A DNA stretch of 64,000 nt, from NCBI GenBank assembly GCA_021613535.1, contig CP075497.1, positions 12,710,001 through 12,774,000 of the forward strand, read 5' to 3'. The stretch comes from Adineta vaga. Its lineage: Eukaryota; Animalia; Rotifera. The translations under genes and the position numbers were made by a program. Positions 729 through 64,000 of this stretch are shown here, one piece after another; position 1 is the first letter of the stretch; each line of letters starts with the position of its first letter. The notes below the pieces were generated by a model that worked only from the letters and a program-made list of their open reading frames with translations, had not been told where the DNA came from and did not search any database.

Positions 729-3700
729 TCACACAGAATCACAACTCTTACTTTGTTTCGGCAATTTGGTTGTTCCATGTGGAGCAGCAGTAGCTTTAGA
801 TGGATGAGCAGCCTTGGTGGTTCCTTGTGGAGCACCTGTGGCTTTCGATGGTTCTGCAGACTTGGTGGTTCCAGCTGGTTTGGGTTGTTTGCTTGATTTC
901 TTTTCATCACTTTCACTCGAAGCCTTGCCACCCTTTGTTGGTTGACCAGATTTGGTTGTTCCATGTGGAGCAGCAGTAGCTTTAGATGGTTGAGCAGCTT
1001 TGGTTGTTCCTTGTGGAGCACCTGTGGCTTTCGATGGTTCTGCAGCCTTGGTGGTTCCAGCTGGTTTGGGTTGTTTGCTCGATTTCTTTTCATCACTTTC
1101 ACTCGAAGCTTTACCACCCTTTGTTGGTTGACCAGATTTGGTTGTTCCATGTGGAGCAGCAGTAGCTTTAGATGGTTGAGCAGCTTTGGTGGTTCCTTGT
1201 GGAGCACCTGTGGCTTTCGATGGTTCTGCAGCCTTGGTGGTTCCAGCTGGTTTCGGTTGTTTGCTCGATTTCTTTTCATCACTTTCACTCGAAGCCTTGC
1301 CACCCTTTGTTGGTTGACCAGATTTGGTTGTTCCATGTGGAGCACCTGTGGCTTTCGATGGTTCTGCAGCCTTGGTGGTTCCAGCTGGTTTGGGTTGTTT
1401 GCTCGATTTCTTTTCATCACTTTCACTCGAAGCTTTACCACCCTTTGTTGGTTGACCAGATTTGGTTGTTCCATGAGGAGCAGCTGTAGCTTTAGATGGT
1501 TGAGCAGCTTTGGTTGTTCCTTGTGGAGCACCTGTGGCTTTCGATGGTTGACCAGCTTTGGTGGTTCCAGCAGGTTTGGGCTGTTTGCTTGACTTGTTTT
1601 CATCACTTTCACTCGAAGCTTTACCACCCTTTGTTGGTTGACCAGATTTGGTTGTTCCATGTGGAGCAGCAGTAGCTTTAGATGGTTGAGCAGCTTTGGT
1701 TGTTCCTTGTGGAGCACCTGTGGCTTTCGATGGTTCTGCAGCCTTGGTGGTTCCAGCTGGTTTGGGTTGTTTGCTTGATTTCTTTTCATCACTTTCACTC
1801 GCAGCTTTACCACCCTTTGTTGGTTGACCAGATTTGGTTGTTCCATGTGGAGCAGCAGTAGCTTTAGATGGTTGAGCAGCTTTGGTGGTTCCTTGTGGAG
1901 CACCTGTGGCTTTCGATGGTTCTGCAGCCTTGGTGGTTCCAGCTGGTTTGGGTTGTTTGCTTGATTTCTTTTCATCACTTTCACTTGAAGCCTTGCCACC
2001 CTTTGTTGGTTGACCAGATTTGGTTGTTCCATGTGGAGCAGCAGTAGCTTTAGATGGTTGAGCAGCTTTGGTGGTTCCTTGTGGAGCACCTGTGGCTTTC
2101 GATGGTTCTGCAGCCTTGGTGGTTCCAGCTGGTTTGGGTTGTTTGCTTGATTTCTTTTCATCACTTTCACTTGAAGCCTTGCCACCCTTTGTTGGTTGAC
2201 CAGATTTGGTTGTTCCATGAGGAGCAGCTGTAGCTTTAGATGGTTGAGCAGCTTTGGTTGTTCCTTGTGGAGCACCTGTGGCTTTCGATGGTTGACCAGC
2301 TTTGGTGGTTCCAGCAGGTTTGGGCTGTTTGCTTGACTTGTTTTCATCACTTTCACTCGAAGCTTTACCACCCTTTGTTGGTTGACCAGATTTGGTTGTT
2401 CCATGAGGAGCAGCAGTAGCTTTAGAAGGTTGAGCAGCTTTGGTGGTTCCTTGTGGAGCACCTGTGGCTTTCGATGGTTCTGCAGCCTTGGTGGTTCCAG
2501 CTGGTTTGGGTTGTTTGCTCGATTTCTTTTCATCACTTTCACTTGAAGCCTTGCCACCCTTTGTTGGTTGACCAGATTTGGTTGTTCCATGTGGAGCACC
2601 TGTGGCTTTCGATGGTTCTGCAGCCTTGGTGGTTCCAGCTGGTTTGGGTTGTTTGCTTGATTTCTTTTCATCACTTTCACTCGAAGCCTTGCCACCCTTT
2701 GTTGGTTGACCAGATTTGGTTGTTCCATGTGGAGCAGCAGTAGCTTTAGATGGTTGAGCAGCTTTGGTGGTTCCTTGTGGAGCACCTGTGGCTTTCGATG
2801 GTTCTGCAGCCTTGGTGGTTCCAGCTGGTTTGGGTTGTTTGCTTGATTTCTTTTCATCACTTTCACTTGAAGCCTTGCCACCCTTTGTTGGTTGACCAGA
2901 TTTGGTTGTTCCATGTGGAGCAGCAGTAGCTTTAGATGGTTGAGCAGCTTTGGTGGTTCCTTGTGGAGCACCTGTGGCTTTCGATGGTTCTGCAGCCTTG
3001 GTGGTTCCAGCTGGTTTCGGTTGTTTGCTCGATTTCTTTTCATCACTTTCACTCGAAGCCTTGCCACCCTTTGTTGGTTGACCAGATTTGGTTGTTCCAT
3101 GTGGAGCACCTGTGGCTTTCGATGGTTCTGCAGCCTTGGTGGTTCCAGCTGGTTTGGGTTGTTTGCTTGATTTCTTTTCATCACTTTCACTTGAAGCCTT
3201 GCCACCCTTTGTTGGTTGACCAGATTTGGTTGTTCCATGTGGAGCAGCAGTAGCTTTAGATGGTTGAGCAGCTGTCGTCGTAACAGGTTTTTGTGATGCT
3301 TTAGCACCAGTTGTCTTCTTTTCGTCGCTCTCTGAGCTTGAGCTAGAGTCATCTTCATCGGGTTGATTTTCATTGGTGACTGTGTCGTGCAAGTCCTTGT
3401 CCTTGCATGTGTCTTTCAATGAGTCGATCACTTGTTTTTGTTGGGCTTTACCGCATGGAAGTTTGTAGTGGAATTCGGTTGCCTTCTTGTCACCAGCGGT
3501 CTTCACGATTTGAACTTTATCGGTGAATTTGACACCGAGTTTGTTGAGACGGCCATGGAGAAGGTTAGTGAGGGTACCACCGACATTGCCGCATCGAGAT
3601 GGTTTACGGGCGAAACGTGTTGCATGACATCCACCGACACGGATGACACCTGTAACTGTGTTCTCGTCTTGAGCTTGAACTTTGTGGTCTTTGTCGCAAT

Positions 3701-6700
3701 CGACTGTGGCGGGTTTGCTTGGTTTGAGTGTCTTGCCTGATTTAGAGGTGACTTTCTTTGTTGGAGCAGCAGATGCTGGTTTCTGTGTTGGGGCAGCAGA
3801 TGCTGGTTTCTGTGAAGCCTTAGCACCAGTTGTCTTCTTTTCGTCGCTCTCTGAGCTTGAGCTAGAGTCATCTTCATCTGGTTGATTTTCATTGGTGACT
3901 GTATCGTGCAAGTCCTTGTCCTTGCATGTGTCTTTCAATGAGTCGATCACTTGTTTTTGTTGGGCTTTACCACATGGAAGTTTATAGTGGAATTCAGTTG
4001 CTTTCTTGTCACCAGCTGTCTTCACGATTTGTACTTTATCGGTGAATTTGACACCGAGTTTGTTGAGACGGCCATGGAGAAGGTTAGTGAGGGTACCACC
4101 GACATTGCCGCATCGAGATGGTTTACGAGCGAAACGTGTTGCATGACATCCACCGACACGGATGACACCTGTAACTGTGTTCTCGTCTTGAGCTTGAACT
4201 TTGTGGTCTTTGTCGCAATCGACTGTGGCGGGTTTGCTTGGTTTGAGTGTCTTGCCTGATTTCGATGTGACTTTCTTGGTTGGAGCGGCTGTTGCTGGTT
4301 TCTGTGTTGGAGCAGCAGATGCTGGTTTCTGTGTTGGAGCAGCAGATGCTGGTTTCTGTGTTGGGGCAGCAGATGCTGGTTTCTGTGAAGCCTTAGCACC
4401 AGTTGTCTTCTTTTCGTCGCTCTCTGAGCTTGAGCTAGAGTCATCTTCATCTGGTTGATTTTCATTGGTGACTGTATCGTGCAAGTCCTTGTCCTTGCAT
4501 GTGTCTTTCAATGAGTCGATCACTTGTTTTTGTTGGGCTTTGCCGCATGGAAGTTTGTAGTGGAATTCAGTTGCCTTCTTGTCACCAGCTGTCTTCACGA
4601 TTTGAACTTTGTCGGTGAATTTGACACCGAGTTTGTTGAGACGGCCATGGAGAAGGTTGGTGAGGGTACCACCGACATTACCGCATCGAGATGGTTTACG
4701 AGCGAAACGTGTTGCATGACATCCACCGACACGGATGACACCTGTGACTGTGTTGTCGTCTTGAGCTTGAACTTTGTGGTCTTTGTCGCAATCAACTGTG
4801 GCAGGTTTGCTTGGTTTGAGTGTCTTGCCTGATTTCGATGTGACTTTCTTTGTTGGAGCAGCAGTTGCTGGTTTAGCTGTGTTGGAGCAGCAGATGCTGG
4901 TGTTGGGCAGCAGATGCTGGTTTCTGCTTTTTGTGAAGCCTTAGCACCAGTTGTCTTCTTTTCGTCGCTCTCTGAGCTTGAGCTAGAGTCATCTTCATCT
5001 GGTTGATTTTCATTGGTGACTGTATCGTGCAAGTCCTTGTCCTTGCATGTGTCTTTCAATGAGTCGATCACTTGTTTTTGTTGGGCTTTGCCGCATGGAA
5101 GTTTGTAGTGGAATTCAGTTGCCTTCTTGTCACCAGCTGTCTTCACGATTTGAACTTTGTCGGTGAATTTGACACCGAGTTTGTTTAGACGGCCGTGGAG
5201 AAGATTGGTGAGGGTACCACCGACATTACCGCATCGAGATGGTTTACGAGCGAAACGTGTTGCATGACATCCACCGACACGGATGACACCTGTAACTGTG
5301 TTGTCGTCTTGAGCTTGAACATTATGATCTTTGTCGCAATCAACTGTGGCAGGTTTGCTTGGTTTGAGTGTCTTGCCTGATTTTGATGTAACAGCCTTGG
5401 TTGGAGCAGCTGTTGCTGGTTTGGCTGTTGTTGGAGCAGCGGTAGCTGGAGCAGCTGTGGCTGCTTTTTGTGTAGCCTTAGCACCAGTTGTCTTCTTTTC
5501 ATCACTCTCAGAGCTTGAGCTAGAGTCATCTTCATCTGGTTGATTTTCATTGGTGACTGTATCGTGCAAGTCCTTGTCCTTGCATGTGTCTTTCAATGAG
5601 TCGATCACTTGTTTTTGTTGGGCTTTGCCGCATGGAAGTTTGTAGTGGAATTCAGTTGCTTCTTGTCACCAGCTGTCTTCACGATTTGAACTTTGTCGGT
5701 GAATTTGACACCGAGTTTGTTGAGACGGCCGTGGAGAAGATTGGTGAGGGTACCACCGACATTACCGCATCGAGATGGTTTACGAGCGAAACGGGTTGCA
5801 TGACATCCACCGACACGAATGACACCTGTGACTGTGTCGTCTTGAGCTTGAACTTTATGATCTTTGTCGCAATCAACTGTGGCAGGTTTGCTTGGTTTGA
5901 GTGTCTTGCCTGATTTCGATGTGACTTTCTTTGTTGGAGCAGCAGTTGCTGGTTTAGCGGTTGTTGGAGCAGCGGTTGCTGGAGCAGCTGTGGCTGCTTT
6001 TTGTGTAGCCTTAGCACCAGTTGTCTTCTTTTCGTCACTCTCAGAGCTTGAGCTAGAGTCATCTTCATCTGGTTGATTTTCATTGGTGACTGTATCGTGC
6101 AAGTCCTTGTCCTTGCATGTGTCTTTCAATGAGTCGATCACTTGTTTTTGTTGGGCTTTGCCGCATGGAAGTTTGTAGTGGAATTCAGTTGCCTTCTTGT
6201 CACCAGCTGTCTTCACGATTTGAACTTTGTCGGTGAATTTGACACCGAGTTTGTTTAGACGGCCGTGGAGAAGATTGGTGAGGGTACCACCGACATTACC
6301 GCATCGAGATGGTTTACGAGCGAAACGTGTTGCATGACATCCACCGACACGGATGACACCTGTGACTGTGCTGTCGTCTTGAGCTTGAACTTTGTGGTCT
6401 TTGTCGCAGTCGACTGTGGCAGGTTTGCTTGGTTTGAGTGTCTTGCCTGATTTCGATGTGACTTTCTTTGTTGGAGCAGCAGTTGCTGGTTTTTGTGTTG
6501 CCGCAGCAGTTGCTGGAGCAGCTGTGGCTGCTTTTTGTGTAGCCTTAGCACCAGTTGTCTTCTTTTCATCACTCTCAGAGCTTGAGCTAGAGTCATCTTC
6601 ATCGGGTTGATTTTCATTGGTGACTGTATCGTGCAAGTCCTTGTCCTTGCATGTGTCTTTCAATGAGTCGATCACTTGTTTTTGTTGGGCTTTGCCGCAT

Positions 6701-9700
6701 GGAAGTTTGTAGTGGAATTCAGTTGCCTTCTTGTCACCAGCTGTCTTCACGATTTGAACTTTGTCGGTGAATTTGACACCGAGTTTGTTTAGACGGCCGT
6801 GGAGAAGATTGGTGAGGGTACCACCGACATTACCGCATCGAGATGGTTTACGAGCGAAACGTGTTGCATGACATCCACCGACACGGATGACACCTGTGAC
6901 TGTGTTGTCGTCTTGAGCTTGAACTTTGTGGTCTTTGTCGCAATCGACTGTGGCAGGTTTGCTTGGTTTGAGTGTCTTGCCTGATTTCGATGTGACTTTC
7001 TTTGTTGGAGCAGCAGTTGCTGGTTTCTGAGTGGCTGGTTTTTGTGTTGGTGCAGCTGTGGCTGCTTTTTGTGTAGCCTTAGCACCAGTTGTCTTCTTTT
7101 CATCACTCTCAGAGCTTGAGCTAGAGTCATCTTCATCTGGTTGATTTTCATTGGTGACTGTATCGTGCAAGTCCTTGTCCTTGCATGTGTCTTTCAATGA
7201 GTCGATCACTTGTTTTTGTTGGGCTTTGCCGCATGGAAGTTTGTAGTGGAATTCAGTTGCCTTCTTGTCACCAGCTGTCTTCACGATTTGAACTTTGTCG
7301 GTGAATTTGACACCGAGTTTGTTTAGACGGCCGTGGAGAAGATTGGTGAGGGTACCACCGACATTACCGCATCGAGATGGTTTACGAGCGAAACGTGTTG
7401 CATGACATCCACCGACACGGATGACACCTGTGACTGTGCTGTCGTCTTGAGCTTGAACTTTGTGGTCTTTGTCGCAGTCGACTGTGGCAGGTTTGCTTGG
7501 TTTGAGTGTCTTGCCTGATTTCGATGTGACTTTCTTTGTTGGAGCAGCAGTTGCTGGTTTAGCGGTTGTTGGAGCAGCGGTTGCTGGAGCAGCTGTGGCT
7601 GCTTTTTGTGTAGCCTTAGCACCAGTTGTCTTCTTTTCATCACTCTCAGAGCTTGAGCTAGAGTCATCTTCATCTGGTTGATTTTCATTGGTGACTGTAT
7701 CGTGCAAGTCCTTGTCCTTGCATGTGTCTTTCAATGAGTCGATCACTTGTTTTTGTTGGGCTTTGCCGCATGGAAGTTTGTAGTGGAATTCAGTTGCCTT
7801 CTTGTCACCAGCTGTCTTCACGATTTGAACTTTGTCGGTGAATTTGACACCGAGTTTGTTGAGACGGCCATGGAGAAGGTTGGTGAGGGTACCACCGACA
7901 TTGCCGCATCGAGATGGTTTACGAGCGAAACGTGTTGCATGACAGCCACCGACACGAATGACACCTGTGACTGTGTTATCGTCTTGCGATTGGACTTTGT
8001 GGTCTTTGTCGCAATCAACTGTGGCAGGTTTGCTTGGTTTGAGTGTCTTGCCTGATTTTGATGTAACAGCCTTGGTTGGAGCAGCTGTTGCGGGTTTCTG
8101 TGTTGGTGCAGCTGTTGCTGGTTTGGCTGTTGTTGGAGCAGCGGTTGCTGGAGCAGCTGTGGCTGCTTTTTGTGTAGCCTTAGCACCAGTTGTCTTCTTT
8201 TCATCACTCTCAGAGCTTGAACTAGAGTCATCTTCATCGGGTTGATTTTCCTTGGTGCATGTATCGTGCAAGTCCTTGTCCTTGCATGTGTCTTTCAATG
8301 AGTCGATCACTTGTTTTTGTTGGGCTTTACCACATGGAAGTTTGTAGTGGAATTCAGTTGCTTTCTTGTCACCAGCTGTCTTCACGATTTGAACTTTGTC
8401 GGTGAATTTGACACCGAGTTTGTTGAGACGGCCTTGGAGAAGGTTGGTGAGGGTACCACCGACATTGCCGCATCGAGATGGTTTACGAGCGAAACGTGTT
8501 GCATGACAGCCACCGACACGAATGACACCTGTGACTGTGTTATCGTCTTGCGATTGGACTTTGTGGTCTTTGTCGCAATCAACTGTGGCAGGTTTGCTTG
8601 GTTTGAGTGTCTTGCCTGATTTCGATGTGACTGCCTTGGTTGGAGCTGCAGTTGCTGGTTTGGCTGTTGTTGGAGCAGCGGTTGCTGGTTTGGCGGTTGT
8701 TGCAGCGGCAGTTGCTGGTTTGGCGGTTGTTGCAGCGGCAGTTGCTGGTTTGGCGGTTGTTGCAGCAGCAGTTGCTGGTTTAGCTGTTGAGGCTGCAGTG
8801 TTTCCGGGTTTTCCGGATGCACGTGTGGTTTCTTCGGAACTACTGCTGTCGCTGTCATCATCATCGTCGCGTTTGAGCGACTCTTTTTCAATGGTTTTCT
8901 TCACCTAAAGGGAAGTTTATTGAGGAATTATTTCGTCGTGAGAGAATAAAGTTTTTTTTTGGAAGTTATGTTATGTATAAAATTTGCCGTGGTATAGGTC
9001 AAATTTGTTTTTTTTAAGCTTGAATGAGCAGAGACTGTTAGTCTGGTGTTGAATTCGTTTGTTTTGCTGTCTTGTTTTTGTTCTGTTAACGTGTGAAAGT
9101 AGAGTGGGATGATATGCTAGATTTTTTTCTCACAGTTTTCGTTTAATGTCATGTCGGTTTAGGTAGAATTCAGCGTGAAAATGCTTGTTGTGCGGAAAAA
9201 GGTATCCATGTACTTTACTGTGGTTTTGCGTTAGGAAGGGTGCCTAGTGCTGTGGAATGGGTGGCACGATTGAGATCAACAGATGATCGCTTCGTGGTTT
9301 ATACTAGTTTTGATTAGACATTCTATAGCACGATCGCTTTCAGTTTCGAAAGGTGTCGTCACTTATGTTTGTTAATCAATCGTGCTGTCGTTTTCACATT
9401 AACATATTCACGAAATAGTAGGAAAAAGACTACGAAGTTATGAAAGGTTTGCGAAAGTTTACCGCTTACGTGATCGTTCGGTTCCCTTACGCACCTTTCG
9501 TTTGCGGCGCAGTTTCTTTTGTAAAATTTTGTTTTTACGAACCTCATTCGGTCGATCACTATATAAGTATGCCAAAGCGAGACTTTTCTTCCGGCGTGTA
9601 ATTGTTATAATTATTCTTTTGCCGAACGGGTGCATGTAAATGAAAGTTTTAGTAAACTAGCCGTGTCGTAGGGTCGAAAGACACAGTGTAGTTGTATTTT

Positions 9701-12700
9701 TCGATGATTTTCTCACTGCACTGTTGTCAATTGAATAGAGAAAGTTCTAAAAGCGAGAGCGGTTTTAGCGTTGGAAACGTTCTCTTCTGAGGTCAGGTAT
9801 AGTTCTAGAGTACCCAAACTCTTTCTAATATAAGCAGGATGATGCTCCGTAAACAAGGGCGTCCAGTGTCAGATCACGTGATTAAATGTAAGTGTCAGAT
9901 AAAGAATGTTGAGGTAGAGCTAAATATTGAGATTCAGTTTAGTAGCGTTTGTACAAATTCTGCCGATAGAGATGCGTTCATACAGCGAGAAGATTTTTTG
10001 ACATAACAAAAATAACTAGTGATTTGATTCTTAAAACTGAGAAGATGTCTTTGCTATGGGTAATCAGTTTAACATGGGATACGAGCGTAATTTCGTAACG
10101 CCTTTTTATCAGGAAAATATGATGTTTCATGAAAACTTAATATTTGGAAAGCTTTTGAACTTATGGAAGACATGAGCAATGTTGCCCAATGCGTGATGGA
10201 CAAGAATGAACTATTCCGAACACGAAAACGGTACGTATATAAGTACAACCGAAATGATACACTGATACTAGTACTTCGAATATTCTGCTCGTTTTTTATA
10301 GCAAGTTCAAACTGTTCTTTGGGAAACTGAAATATGCATTATCAGCTGTGATCTGTTCGGAAGATATGAATGTCACACGACGATTCATCAAAAAACTCAA
10401 AACAGGAAATTACATAAATCTGAAAAGCTTACGTCTTTCCTATTATAGAATCTTTGTCATGTACATCATCAAATTACCGATTTCTTCGGAGTTTGATGAC
10501 TATTCTGCTTGATTACACTCATAATGTTTCAATCTAGTATTATAAACTCTGAGTTTCCAGCTAGTTAAATACTTCTGACAGAAGATCTACGATGGATCTG
10601 CTTTTGCCTGAAATAGGCGATTTAGAATTCATTATTCTTACCTCGTCATCTTTACATGTTTTCTTCAAAGCTGCTTTTGCTTTTGATTGTTCTGCTTTTG
10701 GTACATTAACAGTGTACGAAAATACAGTGTGTGTTTTGTTTCCAGTAAGAACTTTTACACTACATGGATAATTAACCTTTGTACCATGGAGCTGTTGGAA
10801 GTAGTTTCGAAGTTGTGTACAAACAGTTGATGAAAGAGCAGCAAGACGTGTTGCATTGTTAGCAAATCGTTTTTCGCAAGGACAATCTTGAACAACAATT
10901 TTACCAGTTAATGTCTGATCTTGTTCTTCAATATCATCGTCATCGCAATTCTTGACTTGAACTGTGCGTGTGGTTGCTGGTGGTCTCTTTGTTACACCGG
11001 CTTGAGTAGGTTTCTTTGTAGCTAGAAAATCAATGAAATTATAATTATTTAAACTGTAGTCTTTGTTTGGACAGAAACCTATGTAAGATCATATCTCTTC
11101 CTGAAAAGTGTGTTTTTACTTTCCATAGTGAAAACATAAGAAACTAGGAGATCTATGCGAGATACCTCAGTTACTGGTCGATATCTCATTATAGAGGGTG
11201 GGCTCTCAGTTAATTGGTGACAAGAAATTTAAATATTTCAATTATCTGTAAAAACTCACCGAGTAAAAACTATTATAAGTATTACAGATTAACTTAAAGG
11301 TTTTGTCACAAGAGAAACATTAGTGAACAGAAATACAAGTTAGTGAACTCGACGGAAAAACGTTTTCATGCATTTTTAGACGCTCTGAGATGGATTGATG
11401 TGTGTGAATGGAGACCAAACATTTAGCATTTGGTCACGATCAGGCCCATTCTCAAAATGCGCAACGTATTTCACTTGTTGTGTTCGAGATTCATTTAACA
11501 AAACCTTTCTACAAAAGTAGGTTGATCGTGAATTTAACCCACTGGCCTCTCAGATCCCATTCTTTCATACTAACTGGTCACTTTCTCAGGAAATATTCCT
11601 AAAAATATTTAGAACCAAAACAAGCTTGCAGATACTCATCAGCCGAACCACTCAATAAACCCATGGTATTCAACATTAAATTCTGAACCATACCCGAAAA
11701 GGTCTCAAAAAGTAAACCAAGGTCTATAGATATTAATTCAAACACTGCATTACTCATGAAAAATTTCACCTTATTTAACACTTAGCACGATCGAAAATTT
11801 TACACTTCTTATTAAACATTTTTTCATGGTATACTTTCTACACATATCATAAACTGAAGTACGTAAAATAATCAAATCGATATTCACCAACTAACTTTGG
11901 ATCGCTATAAATGGCAACATAATTTCTATTTAATCTTAAAACTTCTGAAGACAGTGAAACTTTAGAAAACTTACTTGTCTTCACTGTAGTTTTGGCTGTT
12001 GTTGGTTTTTCGGTAGGTTTGGCTGTCGTGGCCTTTTCCGTAGCAGCAGCCGTGGCTGCCTTTTGTGTAGCCTTAGCACCAGTTGTCTTCTTTTCATCAC
12101 TCTCAGAGCTTGAGCTAGAGTCATCTTCATCGGGTTGATTTTCCTTGGTGCATGTATCGTGCAAGTCCTTGTCCTTGCATGTGTCTTTCAATGAGTCGAT
12201 CACTTGTTTTTGTTGGGCTTTACCACATGGAAGTTTATAGTGGAATTCAGTTGCTTTCTTGTCACCAGCTGTCTTCACGATTTGAACTTTGTCGGTGAAT
12301 TTGACACCGAGTTTGTTGAGACGGCCTTGGAGAAGGTTGGTGAGGGTACCACCGACATTGCCGCATCGGGATGGTTTACGAGCGAAACGTGTTGCATGAC
12401 AGCCACCGACACGAATGACACCTGTGACTGTGTTATCGTCTTGCGATTGGACTTTGTGGTCTTTGTCGCAATCAACTGTGGCAGGTTTGCTTGGTTTGAG
12501 TGTCTTGCCTGATTTCGATGTAACAGCCTTGGTTGGAGCAGCTGTTGCGGGTTTCTGTGTTGGTGCAGCTGTTGCTGGTTTGGCTGTTGTTGGAGCAGCG
12601 GTTGCTGGAGCAGCTGTGGCTGCACCAGTTGTCTTCCATCACTCTCAGAGCTTGAACTAGAGTCATCTTCATCGGGTTGATTCTCCTTGGTGCATGTATC

Positions 12701-15357
12701 GTGTAAGTCCTTGTCCTTGCATGTGTCTTTCAATGAGTCGATCACTTGTTTTTGTTGGGCTTTGCCGCATGGAAGTTTGTAGTGGAATTCAGTTGCCTTC
12801 TTGTCACCAGCTGTCTTCACGATTTGAACTTTGTCGGTGAATTTGACACCGAGTTTGTTGAGACGGCCTTGGAGAAGGTTGGTGAGGGTACCACCGACAT
12901 TACCGCATCGAGATGGTTTACGAGCGAAACGTGTTGCATGGCATCCACCGACACGGATGACACCTGTGACTGTGTTATCGTCTTGTGTTTGAACTTTGTG
13001 GTCTTTGTCGCAATCAACTGTGGCAGGTTTGCTTGGTTTGAGTGTCTTGCCTGATTTCGATGTGACTGCCTTGGTTGGAGCTGCAGTTGCTGCTTTGGCT
13101 GTTGTTGGAGCAGCCGTAGCTGGAGCAGCTGTGGCTGCTTTTTGTGTAGCCTTAGCACCAGTTGTCTTCTTTTCATCACTCTCAGAGCTTGAACTAGAGT
13201 CATCTTCATCGGGTTGATTTTCCTTGGTGCATGTATCGTGCAAGTCCTTGTCCTTGCATGTGTCTTTCAATGAGTCGATCACTTGTTTTTGTTGGGCTTT
13301 ACCACATGGAAGTTTATAGTGGAATTCAGTTGCTTTCTTGTCACCAGCTGTCTTCACGATTTGAACTTTGTCGGTGAATTTGACACCGAGTTTGTTGAGA
13401 CGGCCTTGGAGAAGGTTGGTGAGGGTACCACCGACATTGCCGCATCGGGATGGTTTACGAGCGAAACGTGTTGCATGACAGCCACCGACACGAATGACAC
13501 CTGTGACTGTGTTATCGTCTTGCGATTGGACTTTGTGGTCTTTGTCGCAATCAACTGTGGCAGGTTTGCTTGGTTTGAGTGTCTTGCCTGATTTCGATGT
13601 AACAGCCTTGGTTGGAGCTGCAGTTGCTGGTTTGGCTGTTGTTGGAGCCGCCGTCGCTGGTTTGGCGGTTGTTGGTTTTTCTGTTGGTGCAGCCGTTGCT
13701 TTTTGTGTTGCTACAGGTTTCACTGGAGCACCTGTTGCTTCTTCCGAGCTGCTACTATCACTATCATCATCACCATCACGTTTAATTGATTCTTTTTCAA
13801 TGGTTTTTTTTACCTGAATTGAAACATGATATTAAAAAATTATTAATTTTTTGTTTCTTATCATTCGAAGTCAATTTAGAATTCATTATTCTTACCTCGT
13901 CATCTTTGCATGTTTTCTTCAAAGCTACTTTTGCTTTTGATTGTTCTGCTTTTGGTACATTAACAGTGTACGAAAATACAGTATGTGTTTTGTTTCCAGT
14001 AAGAACTTTTACACTACATGGATAATTAACCTTTGTACTATAAAGCTGTTGGAAGTAGTTTCGAAGTTGTGTACAAACAGTTGATGAAAGAGCAGCAAGA
14101 CGTGTTGCATTGTTAGTAAATCGTTTTTCGCAAGGACAGTCTTGAACAACAATTTTACCGGTTAATGTCTGATCTTTTTCTTCAATATCATCGTCATCGC
14201 AGTTCTTAACTTGAACTGTACGTTTGGTAGCTGGAGCTTTCTTCGGTGCACCAGTTTTGGTTGTTTTACCTTGAGCTAAATAATAAAAAGTGGAATAAAA
14301 CAGTTCATGAATGTACTTGAGTAAAGAGAAATCGGAATCTTTTCTGAAAAAAATCGATTGATTGAAATTTTTTGTGTGAAAATTTTATTTTGTATGACAT
14401 ATATCATTGCCCTTTATTGTCTTGGAATGAATCTCTTCGTTCTGATTGGGAAATGGAAATGGTAGTATTCAGTACTAACTTGTTTTAACTGTTGTTGGAG
14501 CAGCAGTTTGTTTTGTAGTGATGACAACTTTTTCGGTTGTTCTTGGTGCTTCTTTTTGAGTAACTTTGGGTGCTTGTGTTGTTGTTGTTGTTGGTTTGGG
14601 TGCTTGTGTTGTTGTTGTTGTTGGTTTTGGTGCTTGTGTTGTTGTTGTTGTTGTTGTTGGTTTTGGTGCTTGTGTTGTTGTTGTTGATGGTTTTTGTGTT
14701 GAAGCTTTAGCTAAAAAGAAGAAATCTGATATAGTGAAAAGAGTTTTTTTGTAATAAAAATAAAGTTCGAGTATAGAAGAAGATTTAAGTAATTAATTTT
14801 GATGATAAATTGAAAATTAAAAATCTTGAGAAATGAAATAAAATTCACTAACTTTGTTCTGTTGTTTGTTTTTTAGCTTGAGTTGTTTGAACATTAACAG
14901 CTGATTTTTGAATTGTTTTTTTTACATCATCCTGTTTCACACATGTATTCAAAACAGTTTTAGCTGTTTCAGGATTTTTCGCTGCTGTACATTCATAATC
15001 CAAAGCAAGCATTCCATCGCCTAGATCTCTGACACCAGTAACACTAACTTTTGAAGCAGAATTCTTTGAATCATCAGCTTGAACTTTTTGAGTTAATGTT
15101 TTTGATAAAGAATCTTTCGATTGGGAAAGAGAATCTTTATCACAATTAGCGATAACCATTGTACCTCTTAAATTTTCACCTTTATTAACAACCATATGAG
15201 CATTAACTTCTGCTGTTTTTACAGAAGTGGCTTTGAAAGAAGAGAAAAGAAATTAAATAAAGTTAAAGAATAAGATAAAATTATTACTTGCAAATGAACA
15301 TGTTGGGATTTGGAGAAAAGCAATTGCAGATAAAAGAACGAAGAATGTCGTTTTCAT
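729..15357 (-). CDS. Giant secreted modular mucin-/adhesive-like protein (about 3,800 aa in window, 7 exons, 3 apparent frameshift sites, probably continues past window start)
   Basis: ATG at 15357 gives signal peptide MKTTFFVLLSAIAFLQIPTCSFA. GT-AG exons in consistent phase: 15357-15288, 15230-14853, 14710-14480, 14275-13896, 13813-11975, 11021-10642, 8904-752. These join ORFs 14848..15195, 12275..13723, 11847..12278, 5605..8904, 4595..5608 and 729..4598. A phase-1 A|GTAAG donor at 751, like those ending the other linker exons, precedes the nominal stop at 729. Confidence 0.85.
760..3270 (-). repeat. Coding tandem array of 14 units (186-bp/62-aa and 138-bp/46-aa variants), HGTTKSGQPTKGGKASSESDEKKSSKQPKPAGTTKAAEPSKATGAP[QGTTKAAQPSKATAAP]
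   Basis: Near-identical units read directly in ORF 729..4598 and in the DNA. Confidence 0.95.
3290..8640 (-). repeat. Coding tandem array of 10 copies (about 520-570 bp period) of Cys-containing module A plus acidic Ser patch and T/A/P/K linker
   Basis: Repeated PSKPATVDCDKDHKVQ...GGCHATRFARKPSRCGNVGG...HYKLPCGKAQQKQVIDSLKDTCKDKDLHDT followed by QPDEDDSSSSSESDEKK. Confidence 0.95.
10642..11021 (-). repeat. Duplicated exon encoding module B (paralog at 13896..14275)
   Basis: Both 380-bp exons encode ...VQVKNCDDDDIEE-DQTLTGKIVVQDCPCEKRF...KKTCKDDE with near-identical DNA and the same GTAAGAATAATGAATTCTAAAT donor flank. Confidence 0.9.
12050..13640 (-). repeat. Second coding array: 3 more copies of module A (LLQGRL/DTCTKE variant)
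   Basis: ORFs 12275..13723 and 11847..12278; these copies share diagnostic variants with the first copy of the 8904 exon. Confidence 0.93.
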
Positions 15358-36991: not shown

Positions 36992-38448
36992 ATGCTGAAA
37001 CTTTTATTAATTCTCTCGTTAATAATAAACATAAATTCATTGAAAATTGATGAATATATATCTTCAGTAGAAGTTTTAATTCAAGATGAAAAATTTCTTG
37101 AAGAATATACAAAATGGTCATTAAAATTATTTTCAACAGAAGATTATATTTATGGTAAACAGAATCAACAATTTCCATGTGAAATTAATTCAAAAAGACA
37201 AATCAATAATTCACTAACAGTTCATACACTTCGTCCAAATGATATTCAATGTGTTGGAGCTATTGGAGATAGTTTAACAGCTGGATTAGGTGCGCATGCT
37301 TTAACACCTGTGGGATTATTTACTGAAAATCGAGGTAAATTTAATATGATATATATATATAGAAAATAACTTTGATGATTGAAGGTGTTTCATGGTCAAT
37401 TGGTGGTGATTATTCATTTAAACAATTAGTTACATTACCAAATATTCTTCGTCAATATAATCCTCAATTAAAAGGTTTTTCAACAAAACAATCATTAATT
37501 TTTGGAAAAGGACAAAATTCCTCACATAATGCTCTTAATGTTGGTAAGTTTATCGTTTTTCTTAATGTTAACTATTCTATTTCGAGAAAGAAAAATTTTA
37601 TTAAGCAAAATCCGGTGATCGATCTTATCATATGATTGATCAAATAAAAATTCTTCATAAAAGATTAATATCAAATGAATATTGTCATATAAATGATGAT
37701 TGGAAAATGATAACATTTTTTATTGGAGTAAGTTGAGATCGAAATCAATTGATTTGATTTGAATTATTTGATTATAGGGAAATGATTTATGTATATTTTG
37801 TGAAGATCTAAATAAACATTCTCCATTAAATTTTACACATTACGTTGAAGAAACATTGGATTATCTTCATGCAAATTTTCCTCGTACATTCGTTAATCTT
37901 GTTCTTGTTCTTGATGTACGTAATGTTGAAAAATTAAATGCTGGTGGAACTGTTTGTAAATTACTTCATAATCGAACATGTCCATGTGCTGCTTTTCCTT
38001 CTGATGATGATCGAAGAACATTAAGTGAATGGATTCCATTATATCATAAATATATTGTGGATTTAATTAATACGGGAAAATATGATACACGAGATGATTT
38101 TACTGTTGTTATTCAACCGTTTATGGCACACACGCAAATTCCTTTAGTTGATGGAGAAATTGATTATAGTTTTTTTGCTCCAGATTGTTTTCATTTTAGT
38201 GGTTTGTCTAGTTATTTCTAAAGTCTGTTTGATACTTATTTCATATATTTGTAGGTAAAGGACATTCACGTGCTTCATTATCATTATGGAATAATATGCT
38301 TGAACAAGTTGGAGAAAAGAAATGGGAATGGCATCAAGGTGAAACATTGGAATGTCCAACTGAAGAAAGACCTTATTTTGCTACAAGATTAAATTCTCAT
38401 CAATCATTCGAAAAAATTCCTTTAATTAAATCAAAAGGAATTTCATAA
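36992..38448 (+). CDS. Secreted phospholipase B1-like GDSL lipase, copy 1 (5 exons)
   Basis: Signal peptide, [69 protein letters not shown]. Confidence 0.92.
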
Positions 38449-41359: not shown

Positions 41360-43034
41360 AATTAAGTTTTCTTTCCGATACTTTAATTCTCAAACTGAAT
41401 ATTATCTTTCTTCTAAGTAACTGGTTGAAAACAAAAAAGAATCTGTTAATGTGGGTGTTCGATATATTTATCTTTTGATAATCAAGTTTCTTTTTTACTT
41501 CTGTGTGAATAATAACCAACTGATATTTTGATTATATTTATCTGATTGATTGAAAAGTTTTACATAAAAAAAATAAATCTAAAAGAAAAATGCTGAAATT
41601 TTTATTAATTCTCTCGTTGATAATAAACATAAATTCATTGAAAATTGATGAATATATATCTTCAGTAGAAGTTTTAATTCAAGATGAAAAATTTCTTGAA
41701 GAATATACAAAATGGTCATTAAAATTATTTTCAACAGAAGATTATATTTATGGTAAACAGAATCAACAATTTCCATGTGAAATTAATTCAAAAAGACAAA
41801 TCAATAATTCACTAACAGTTCATACACTTCGTCCAAATGATATTCAATGTGTTGGAGCTATTGGAGATAGTTTAACAGCTGGATTAGGTGCGCATGCTTT
41901 AACACCTGTGGGATTATTTACTGAAAATCGAGGTAAATTTAATATGATATATATATATAGAAAATAACTTTGATAATTGAAGGTGTTTCATGGTCAATTG
42001 GTGGTGATTATTCATTTAAACAATTAGTTACATTACCAAATATTCTTCGTCAATATAATCCTCAATTAAAAGGTTTTTCAACAAAACAGTCATTAATTTT
42101 TGGAAAAGGACAAAACTCCTCACATAATGCTCTTAATGTTGGTAAGTTTATCGTTTTTCTTAATGTTAACTATTCTATTTCGAAAAAGAAAAATTTTATT
42201 AAGCAAAATCCGGTGATCGATCTTATCATATGATTGATCAAATAAAAATTCTTCATGAAAGATTAATATCAAATGAATATTGTCATATAAATGATGATTG
42301 GAAAATGATAACATTTTTTATTGGAGTAAGTTGAGATCGAAATCAATTGATTTGATTTGAATTATTTGATTATAGGGAAATGATTTATGTATATTTTGTG
42401 AAGATTTAAATAAACATTCTCCATTAAATTTTACACATTACGTTGAAGAAACATTGGATTATCTTCATGCAAATTTTCCTCGTACATTTGTTAATCTTGT
42501 TCTTGTTCTTGATGTACGTAATGTTGAGAAATTAAATGCTGGTGGAACTGTTTGTAAATTACTTCATAATCGAACATGTCCATGTGCTGCTTTTCCTTCT
42601 GATGATGATCGAAGAACATTAAGTGAATGGATTCCATTATATCATAAATATATTGTGGATTTAATTAATACGGGAAAATATGATACACGAGATGATTTTA
42701 CTGTTGTTATTCAACCGTTTATGGCACACACGCAAATTCCTTTAGTTGATGGAGAAATTGATTATAGTTTTTTTGCTCCAGATTGTTTTCATTTTAGTGG
42801 TTTGTCTAGTTATTTCTAAAGTCTGTTTGATACTTATTTCATATATTTGTAGGTAAAGGACATTCACGTGCTTCATTATCATTATGGAATAATATGCTTG
42901 AACAAGTTGGAGAAAAGAAATGGGAATGGCATCAAGGTGAAACATTGGAATGTCCAACTGAAGAAAGACCTTATTTTGCTACAAGATTAAATTCTCATCA
43001 ATCATTCGAAAAAATTCCTTTAAATAAATCAAAA
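41360..43034 (+). repeat. Near-identical direct duplication of 36762..38436 (offset 4598 bp)
   Basis: Promoter, exons and introns are the same apart from scattered substitutions. Confidence 0.95.
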
Positions 43035-62492: not shown

Positions 62493-64000
62493 TTAATCAT
62501 GTTCAAAATCATTTCGAATTTCTGTCAAGCAAAAGTAATCTTTAACTGGTATTGAAATGCATTTATGTCTTATTCTAGACATCGGAAGTATATCAAAGAC
62601 GTTAGTTTTTGTTTGCATAGAATATAAGCGATCAATTAATACAGGAATTTGACCAGTATCAGGATCACGAATCTTGAGAATTGACGATAGACGATTAGAT
62701 GGTGCAACTTCTTGATAATGTTTGACTAATACAAAATAATTACTATTAATTTCAATGAATATAATACAATCGCCATAAAGAATATGATCTTCAACATCAT
62801 GTTTATACGAAATGATGTGACTAACACATTTGAACGATTTATCATACAGCACAGAATGAAATGTAATAAATGGACGTTTAAATCGTTTGTAATATTTGAC
62901 CACGTGTGATCCGGAAAATGCCACAAGTTTCGAACGAAATTGATCAAGTAGAGAATTTCCGAGTAAAATCTCATCAACACCAGCTGATTCGTGAACAGGA
63001 ACTACTGATTGATCAATAATAGAAGCCATATCTGTCCAATAGCCGATCTGAGAAGCTAAATTACGTGTACCATGAGTTTTGTTTTTTGTGTAACGAATAC
63101 ATGACTCGAATGCAAATGCTGATGTAAACGACAATCCACCATGATGACGAACTTGCTCTGCCAAATGAAGATGCGCATGTAAACTATACAATTCTATTGT
63201 TGAACCATAAATGAGCGACGAAGATCGACAATAAAAATTGAGTAATTTTTCAGCTAAGTCAATTTCAGATTCATTTTCAGGCGCATGAAGAAGTTTAATT
63301 GCAGATGCATAAACCGCGAAATGAAAAAGAAATGAAGCAGGTATAATATCAATTAGAATTGGAAGACCAATATATAAAACAAATAAGCGGCCGTGTTTGG
63401 CTTTCCAATGAATCACTTCTTTTATAGAAAAGTCAAAACGAACCTTTATATCATGTGGTAAACGTTGAATTGACAATCGGCGATCAACTGATGTATCATC
63501 AAAAGTTTGTGGAAACGATTGCCACCGTTTAATAAGCATTTTAATGTGGTTCAAGCACACCAGATGCATGTAATCATATAAAACACATATTGGGTAGTAT
63601 AGAATTGAGAGTAGTGGTGAAAAGCCACGTACACCATTCACTAAAACTTCATTTTTTGTTCTTTCATTCTTCATACCAGCTAATTGAGCATCACGTAAGA
63701 ATTCATCATGTGTTCGTGGTTTATTATTATTATTTTGATCATATGGATACAGCATAGTACGAGAATGAAAGCTATACTGACCTAAAATTAAGTAAAACTA
63801 TTAGAGGCAATACTTAACGAAAGAGATTAACAAGAAAAAACTCTCAACAAATATAAACTTAAAATATAACCTTACCATGAGCCATACACCACGTACAAGC
63901 ATGATTTCCATTAAAATTGATTGTTTTAAAAAACAATGATTTTGCTGGTAGATCCGCAATAAAACCTTGAATTTGAATACAAAAATGATATTCTTGATTG
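62493..64000 (-). CDS. EnSpm/CACTA transposase (5' end outside window; intron 63782-63875)
   Basis: GFIADLPAK...FNGNHACTWC, YDYMHLVCL, WKAKHGRLFVLY, HAHLHLAEQVRHHGGLSFTSAFAFESC. Confidence 0.88.

Follow-up and report, generated by a model that had tools for sequence, protein, structure and literature searches.

The minus strand of a 64,000-nucleotide stretch of the genome of the bdelloid rotifer Adineta vaga (contig CP075497.1, positions 12,710,001 to 12,774,000; hereafter the window) carries a very large modular gene, which starts at position 15357 and probably encodes a secreted, lineage-specific mucin resembling MUC16 that forms a hydrated, cohesive layer. The product has a signal peptide and long Pro/Thr/Ser-rich (PTS) tandem repeats, which make it a mucin in the broad sense of the term. 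Exons were searched and folded singly, each by its own reference, and none of those scanned has a Pfam match to the VWD, C8, TIL or cystine-knot domains of gel-forming mucins. The predicted protein would start with the signal peptide, followed by 16 modules of three types (N, B and A), which are separated by Thr/Ala/Pro/Lys linkers and each followed by an acidic poly-Ser patch. Its tail would have more than 2,000 amino acids (aa) of Lys-rich and acidic-Ser block repeats and end in a SEA-like domain without a membrane anchor. The protein is a candidate for the mucus, coat or glue of bdelloids and a possible case of SEA-like modules that have evolved past sequence recognition.

In the proposed mechanism, disulfide-stabilised modules would be rigid beads along extended glycosylated linkers, the Thr/Ala/Pro/Lys segments being O-glycosylated mucin-like stalks. 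The Ser-x-Glu (S-x-E) patches would be phosphorylated in the secretory pathway, and the alternating Lys-rich and phospho-acidic blocks would bind one another and surfaces electrostatically. The unpaired Cys predicted in nine of the 13 A modules may provide further cross-links by disulfides, and the whole would form a mucus, coat or glue that is hydrated and cohesive. S-x-E is the consensus of the secretory kinase Fam20C. Phosphorylation of the predicted patches appears feasible, because the A. vaga genome holds Fam20C-type kinase domains (Pfam PF06702, above the cut-off) at G000:C6:9818742-9819630 and C3:6708866-6709554, two loci that are probably an ohnologue pair.

Modules, linkers and repeats

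The modules counted in a motif scan are one of type N, two of type B and 13 of type A. The sequence-only reading, made from the letters of the window before these searches, had given the same tally, and the motifs that it quoted (a strand motif, a hairpin with Tyr and an LKxTCKD ending) are all found by the scan. The two B modules are 90% identical to each other, and B and A modules share 32% identity (E ~4e-5), which bears out the earlier proposal that the module versions are related. The acidic patch DEDDSSSSSESDE stands directly after every A module (13/13), and Thr-rich and Thr/Ala/Pro linkers flank every module. The terminal repeat consists of 14 units of 46 or 62 aa, has 30 S-x-E motifs and is composed of 17% Lys, 16% Ala, 14% Thr, 13.5% Ser, 11% Gly and 11% Pro. 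It measures ~836 aa, close to the ~830 aa given in the sequence-only reading, which had also described the linkers and the DEDDSSSSSESDE patches.

Modules A01 to A04 have six Cys residues and A05 to A13 have five. The first and fifth Cys are invariant among the 95 A-type modules of all species, and in 18 of these five Cys remain, with only the last one missing, so that one unpaired thiol in each five-Cys module, predicted to be the second Cys, is plausible from the sequence pattern.

The Thr-rich linker of exon 3 has no Pfam match. DUF5568 (PF17724) was rejected for the Lys/Ser/Thr repeat, since its 116 bits are the sum of 11 low-complexity stretches and a single 62-aa unit, with 19.2 bits, stays short of the cut-off of 32.4; DUF6496 is a low-complexity sum as well. 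Matches of the long open reading frames (ORFs) to Pyr_redox, AcylCoA_dehyd_C, DUF6935 and COG2p_C are below cut-off or sums over weak repeats.

Fold of the module and of the C-terminal domain

The AlphaFold2 model of module A, built on a 47-sequence alignment, has a mean predicted local distance difference test (pLDDT) of 83.6 and a predicted template modelling (TM) score of 0.71. It has strands at residues 25-31 and 34-42, a long helix at 53-73, strands at 83-89 and 93-101, a helix at 104-117 and a further helix. The C-terminal domain is modelled with a pLDDT of 75.8, and both models are beta-beta-alpha-beta-beta-alpha sandwiches. The sequence-only reading had proposed a SEA-like fold on the grounds of a beta-alpha-beta-beta-alpha spacing; the models give a two-layer alpha/beta sandwich, with another order of elements.

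Structural matches were sought with VIA, in an exhaustive search of 48,161 chains by a tool that calls Z scores below 8 common. For module A, SEA domains or SEA-like MAD domains occupy ranks 1-3, 9, 12 and 13 with Z scores of 6.2-7.0, within the range called common. These include MAD12 of protocadherin-15 (Z 7.0), the MUC16 SEA domain 1ivz (Z 6.9, root-mean-square deviation 3.0 over 94 residues) and the protease SEA domain 2e7v (Z 6.3), and the top 13 also hold the SEA domain of TMPRSS6 and the MUC16 SEA domain 8gkl. For the C-terminal domain, the SEA domain 2e7v is the best match both in VIA (Z 7.1, likewise in the common range) and in Foldseek (E 9e-3, probability 1.0, TM 0.54). The AlphaFold and Foldseek check that the sequence-only reading had recommended for single modules gives the model of module A described above and no Foldseek match below 1e-3 in the PDB. 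A shape search of the ESM Atlas with the module returns only generic ferredoxin- or ACT-like rows (TM <= 0.52). Language-model searches give no usable match for module A and, for the B module, place a SEA cluster second with a score of 0.84, a lead only.

At the level of sequence, neither the A, B and N modules nor the C-terminal domain match Pfam SEA (PF01390) at E <= 1, and profile searches against PDB sequences find no SEA chain. The G/S(V/I)VV autoproteolysis motif, which many SEA domains have and some do not, is absent, and the hairpins read TAGDKKATEF in A, TGNKTHTVF in B and STDKKNNLIV in the C-terminal domain. The earlier suggestion of a SEA-like fold thus has SEA and MAD domains among the best VIA matches of the module on its side (Z ~7), and the unmatched Pfam model and the missing cleavage motif against it. 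The setting is that of SEA domains, with a signal peptide and with Thr-rich, Thr/Ala/Pro linkers beside every module, for which O-glycosylation is predicted from composition. The module and the C-terminal domain are not significantly alike in a profile-profile comparison with clean alignments (probability 2.7%). A first comparison was contaminated by the bdelloid relatives P0068 and P0069, which stood in both alignments.

The resemblance to SEA domains seems to hold at the level of the fold only, where three weak pointers agree and none is decisive. Moving the last strand of a SEA or ferredoxin-like sandwich to the front would give the modelled strand order.

Similarity to known extracellular proteins

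MUC16 (CA125) and other SEA mucins are, like the predicted rotifer protein, very large and extracellular, with tandem alpha/beta modules of ~110-130 aa that contain Cys and alternate with Pro/Thr/Ser-rich linkers. Both the module and the C-terminal domain have the MUC16 SEA structures 1ivz, 8gkl and 7sa9 among their closest structural matches. In contrast, there is no sequence similarity, as judged from Pfam SEA and PDB sequences, and SEA domains have the order beta-alpha-beta-beta-alpha-beta, while beta-beta-alpha-beta-beta-alpha is predicted for the rotifer domains. The rotifer protein also differs from MUC16 in the lack of a transmembrane anchor and of G/SVVV, and in its additional acidic poly-Ser patches and Lys-rich blocks.

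The MAD12 and MAD28 domains of protocadherin-15 and cadherin-23, which are extracellular SEA-like domains of ferredoxin-type fold, rank among the top matches in the VIA search with the module (6c10, Z 7.0; 6bxz, Z 6.9; 8tri, Z 5.8). However, they are single-copy and membrane-adjacent, have no sequence relation to the module and occur in another context. The sandcastle-worm protein Pc3, with its Lys-rich partners, and the H-fibroin of caddisflies resemble the rotifer protein in being secreted and in having acidic Ser runs with S-x-E and Lys-rich blocks, a likeness drawn from composition and general knowledge. The phosphoserine adhesives of aquatic animals have no repeated folded modules, and in several cases the opposite charges reside on separate proteins.

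Relatives and family distribution

The modules (A, B and N) and the C-terminal domain have no Pfam match, and the module has none among PDB sequences in single-sequence and profile searches. A profile search of 1.84 billion protein representatives finds 73 relatives at E <= 1e-3. All relatives with a species name are from bdelloids (Adineta steineri, Rotaria spp. and Didymodactylos carnosus), and all are annotated as 'unnamed protein product'. The sequence-only reading would have fallen with a module belonging to a characterised family, and no such match was found in Pfam, among PDB sequences or in the profile search. No ~100% match, such as an A. vaga gene model would give, was found in the protein collections, where the best matches are 55-67% identical.

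The number and order of modules vary by species, the order being N-PTS-A-B-A-B-A in P0005 and N-B-B-A in P0007. The N module stands at the head of Rotaria and A. steineri proteins (P0005, P0007 and P0002). An acidic Ser patch after each module is usually kept (P0001-P0003 and P0005-P0007), with the variant TDSDSCSSESDE in P0004. The module thus appears to be a clade-restricted, bdelloid-only domain family with N, B and A types and a fourth type in Rotaria.

Four paralogous genes with the C-terminal domain are found in A. vaga, at G000:C1:11789877-11790200, G000:C5:3437184-3437522, G000:C3:1418761-1419105 and G000:C3:3300979-3301281. They share with the window gene, in this order, repeats of the PTS or low-complexity kind, an exon with acidic Ser/Asp residues, an exon with a basic ..R(V/I)R(I/V).. 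end and a C-terminal domain that is 36-47% identical, but they lack the N, B and A modules. The domain marks a small bdelloid family of mucin-like genes, with at least five members in the A. vaga genome.

Gene layout in the window

All exons are on the minus strand. Exon 1 (15288..15357) has the ATG at 15357, a 23-aa signal peptide, MKTTFFVLLSAIAFLQIPTCSFA, and a phase-1 GT donor, as read from the sequence. The signal peptide had been recognised in the sequence-only reading, and the leader is kept as MMQTTFFVLFCAITVVQLPTNSFAG in the syntenic locus of A. steineri. Exon 2 (14853..15230; protein reference window:14854-15228:-) encodes the N module, exon 3 (14480..14710) a Thr-rich, mucin-type PTS linker with TTTTTQAPKP repeats, and exon 4 (13896..14275) the module B1. 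Exon 5 (11975..13813) begins with an acidic VKKTIEKES..DDDSDSSSSEE patch, continues with A01-A03 and their linkers, has a frame break near 12637 and ends at a phase-1 donor (11975/11974). Exon 6 (10642..11021) encodes B2. The first part of exon 7 (3402..8904) repeats the acidic start of exon 5 and then has A04-A13 with Thr/Ala/Pro/Lys linkers and DEDDSSSSSESDE patches, with frame breaks near 5660 and at 4925-4870. Its second part (752..3401) has the fourteen 46- or 62-aa Lys/Ala/Thr/Ser/Gly/Pro units, each with an ASSESDEKK patch, and ends at a phase-1 donor (GT at 751-750).

The introns, with exon junctions read from the sequence, are GT-AG and their phases are compatible. The window contains ORFs of 1099 and 1403 aa, and the G+C content of the coding DNA is 43-48%, compared with 22-32% from 16 kb to the end of the window. 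The view that the separate ORF fragments are pieces of one spliced gene agrees with these introns, but three of the splits between ORFs come from indels, as comparison with sister copies shows. The introns that flank B2 are long (11974-11022, 0.95 kb, before it and 10564-8905, 1.7 kb, after it on the minus strand), while those around B1 have ~80-200 bp, which suggests insertions that postdate the duplication of a B+A block.

Probable continuation to the left of the window

The gene had been proposed to end at position 729. The stop codon at 729-731 lies just past the consensus phase-1 donor at which exon 7 ends and, although in frame, would apply only to a transcript that is unspliced at 752, and the gene most likely runs on to the left. 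The exon end at 752 reads CAA A|GTAAGA and matches the other phase-1 donors of the gene. In the 16 kb of flanking DNA examined left of the window, an interval of 2.8 kb from 752 is followed by a minus-strand array in which ~17 exons of 66 aa (SKRPEDSSSSDSDENNQGSRKPRPSGVTKGTKAPGATKATKATPKATGKPSNGTAAPQKSTHAAGT) alternate with 16 of 13 aa (TKAAPQGTKGPKP). All of them are of phase 1-1, with a period of ~340 bp, and two long exons of the array carry indels. The array ends in an acidic poly-Ser/basic exon (minus strand, ..KPTRKTQVTKRRTGHVVR), which is followed by a 119-aa exon with the C-terminal domain (minus strand, L021:6563-6919, ~8 kb left of the window) and a last mini-exon that encodes LERVFKHQQHY and a stop. 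It is very likely, on the sequence evidence, that the gene continues past 752 into these ~33 further repeat exons and the conserved C-terminal domain. Most likely it covers ~24 kb in total, from 15357 in the window to ~8.5 kb left of it, and encodes ~5,000 aa.

The region from the N module to the C-terminal domain is probably one very large gene, because Rotaria joins modules to the same C-terminal domain and the downstream exons share phase 1 with the donor at 752. The gene is also probably intact. The Rotaria proteins P0068 and P0069 join the module to KRRTGH/..GHI.R and to the same domain, with 70% identity between this domain and that of A. vaga. In Rotaria sp. Silwood1, a compact version of the gene (L042:6717-12208, CAJNZB010000228.1) has the N module, PTS and A, a fourth-type module, the basic exon and the C-terminal domain in this order on one strand within 5.5 kb, and is annotated publicly as two gene calls. 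The orthologue in A. steineri is in a syntenic position, where ABC and OATP genes lie upstream as they do in the window, and its N-B-B-A modules come after the same signal peptide. It is very doubtful that the locus holds two or more genes, with a module array that stops at 729 and an independent repeat array with the C-terminal domain. Such a division would draw on the in-frame stop, which is 7 codons beyond the proposed donor, on the several gene calls in the Rotaria and A. steineri loci and on the 2.8-kb gap, which contains a reverse-transcriptase fragment (..RFADDIDLI..; L022:5575-6531, equal to G000:C6:12708575-12709531, ~0.5-1.4 kb left of the window) on the plus strand, opposite to the gene. 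The donor sequence, the uniform phase of the downstream exons and the Rotaria fusions and compact locus oppose it, as do the lack of a visible start exon with a signal peptide in the gap and the confinement of the modules in A. vaga to this locus. Gene models for the locus are fragmented in several bdelloid genomes.

Frame breaks in the tandem copies

Alignment of the 13 A units places a 4-nt deletion plus an in-frame 18-nt deletion in the linker after A02 (near 12637), an internal 1-nt deletion in A09 (near 5660) and three small indels in the linker after A10 (4925-4870). Tiny introns are ruled out as an explanation, since the breaks are indels of 1-4 nt relative to sister copies. In the 12 unbroken A cores, the variable sites number 2, 2 and 36 at the three codon positions, and the ratio of nonsynonymous to synonymous variation (pN/pS) is 0.076. 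The breaks are probably errors of the nanopore-based assembly, because the A copies are under such strong coding constraint. Polishing of a nanopore assembly with short reads works least well in near-identical tandem repeats, and all breaks fall in tandem copies that are 93-97% identical. The AV20 assembly of Adineta vaga was made from Oxford Nanopore Technologies reads with NextDenovo and polished with HyPo (PMC8494291).

A recently inactivated gene, in which the breaks are real and the product is signal peptide-N-PTS-B1-A01-A02 with an out-of-frame tail, or nothing, is distinctly unlikely. The number of indels relative to sister copies speaks for it, as do the 4-nt deletion, which is atypical of a homopolymer miscall, and the lack of a second gene copy for comparison in the genome (100.8-Mb assembly, 6 contigs). 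Besides the placement of all breaks in the repeats that are hardest to polish, ~3,700 codons without an in-frame stop oppose inactivation, together with pN/pS values of 0.10 and 0.03 inside the copy groups past the breaks. Orthologues are intact, and relatives with unbroken arrays include P0001, which has nine modules in 1546 aa. The locus marks a place where the reference assembly probably has indel errors.

Alternative functions

The reading as a secreted mucin has several points against it. The SEA likeness of the models reaches just Z ~7, which the tool calls common, with a strand order unlike SEA and no Pfam SEA match, and the glycosylation, phosphorylation and disulfide pattern are predictions from composition. 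The splice from 752 across a 2.8-kb intron with a reverse-transcriptase fragment is likewise predicted. The window has five frame-breaking indels and the downstream exon array two more, and if these are real, the protein would end after A02. Among other functions, a glue of the pedal (foot) glands for temporary adhesion, whose phosphoserine patches and Lys-rich blocks would form coacervates like those of sandcastle-worm cement and caddisfly silk, is unlikely but the strongest of those considered. This was the role that the sequence-only reading had put first. Bdelloids creep using foot secretions, and a glue would be in keeping with the block polyampholyte composition, the conserved acidic patches rich in S-x-E, the Fam20C-type kinases of the genome, the predicted secretion of a protein without an anchor and the restriction of the family to bdelloids. 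However, that composition fits any mucin-like coat, and Tyr/dihydroxyphenylalanine (DOPA) chemistry is absent, as are the lectin, vWD and EGF domains that are typical of many characterised adhesive proteins.

A narrower form, in which the protein is the main structural component of a foot-gland glue or of a desiccation-protective coat, as a phospho-polyampholyte cement built on a bdelloid-invented, tandem-expanded and strand-permuted SEA-like fold, is improbable; if true, it would offer the first molecular access to rotifer adhesion. Molecular studies of rotifer adhesives or mucus did not turn up in literature searches, nor did anything relevant on Adineta mucins or SEA domains among the top results. 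Least probable of all, and very much so, is a mucin of the cell-surface glycocalyx that uses its C-terminal SEA-like domain as a membrane tether, in the manner of MUC1 and MUC16. PTS repeats followed by a SEA domain are the usual layout of tethered mucins, and the SEA-like domain of the rotifer protein comes after long PTS repeats. Against a tether, there is no transmembrane helix or tail of the glycosylphosphatidylinositol type, the protein stops after LERVFKHQQHY in the last exon, an ending that is kept in Rotaria, and the G/SVVV cleavage motif is absent. The secreted mucin is preferred, with moderate confidence.

Other features nearby

The genes next to the mucin-like gene are of animal type. 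The window also contains a GDSL-type lipase-like secreted gene (..GDSLTAG..) in two near-identical copies on the plus strand, at 36992-38221 and 41590-42819. The copies are 4,598 bp apart and are a recent tandem duplication. An intact ORF of 420 aa on the minus strand (62493-63755) looks transposase-derived.

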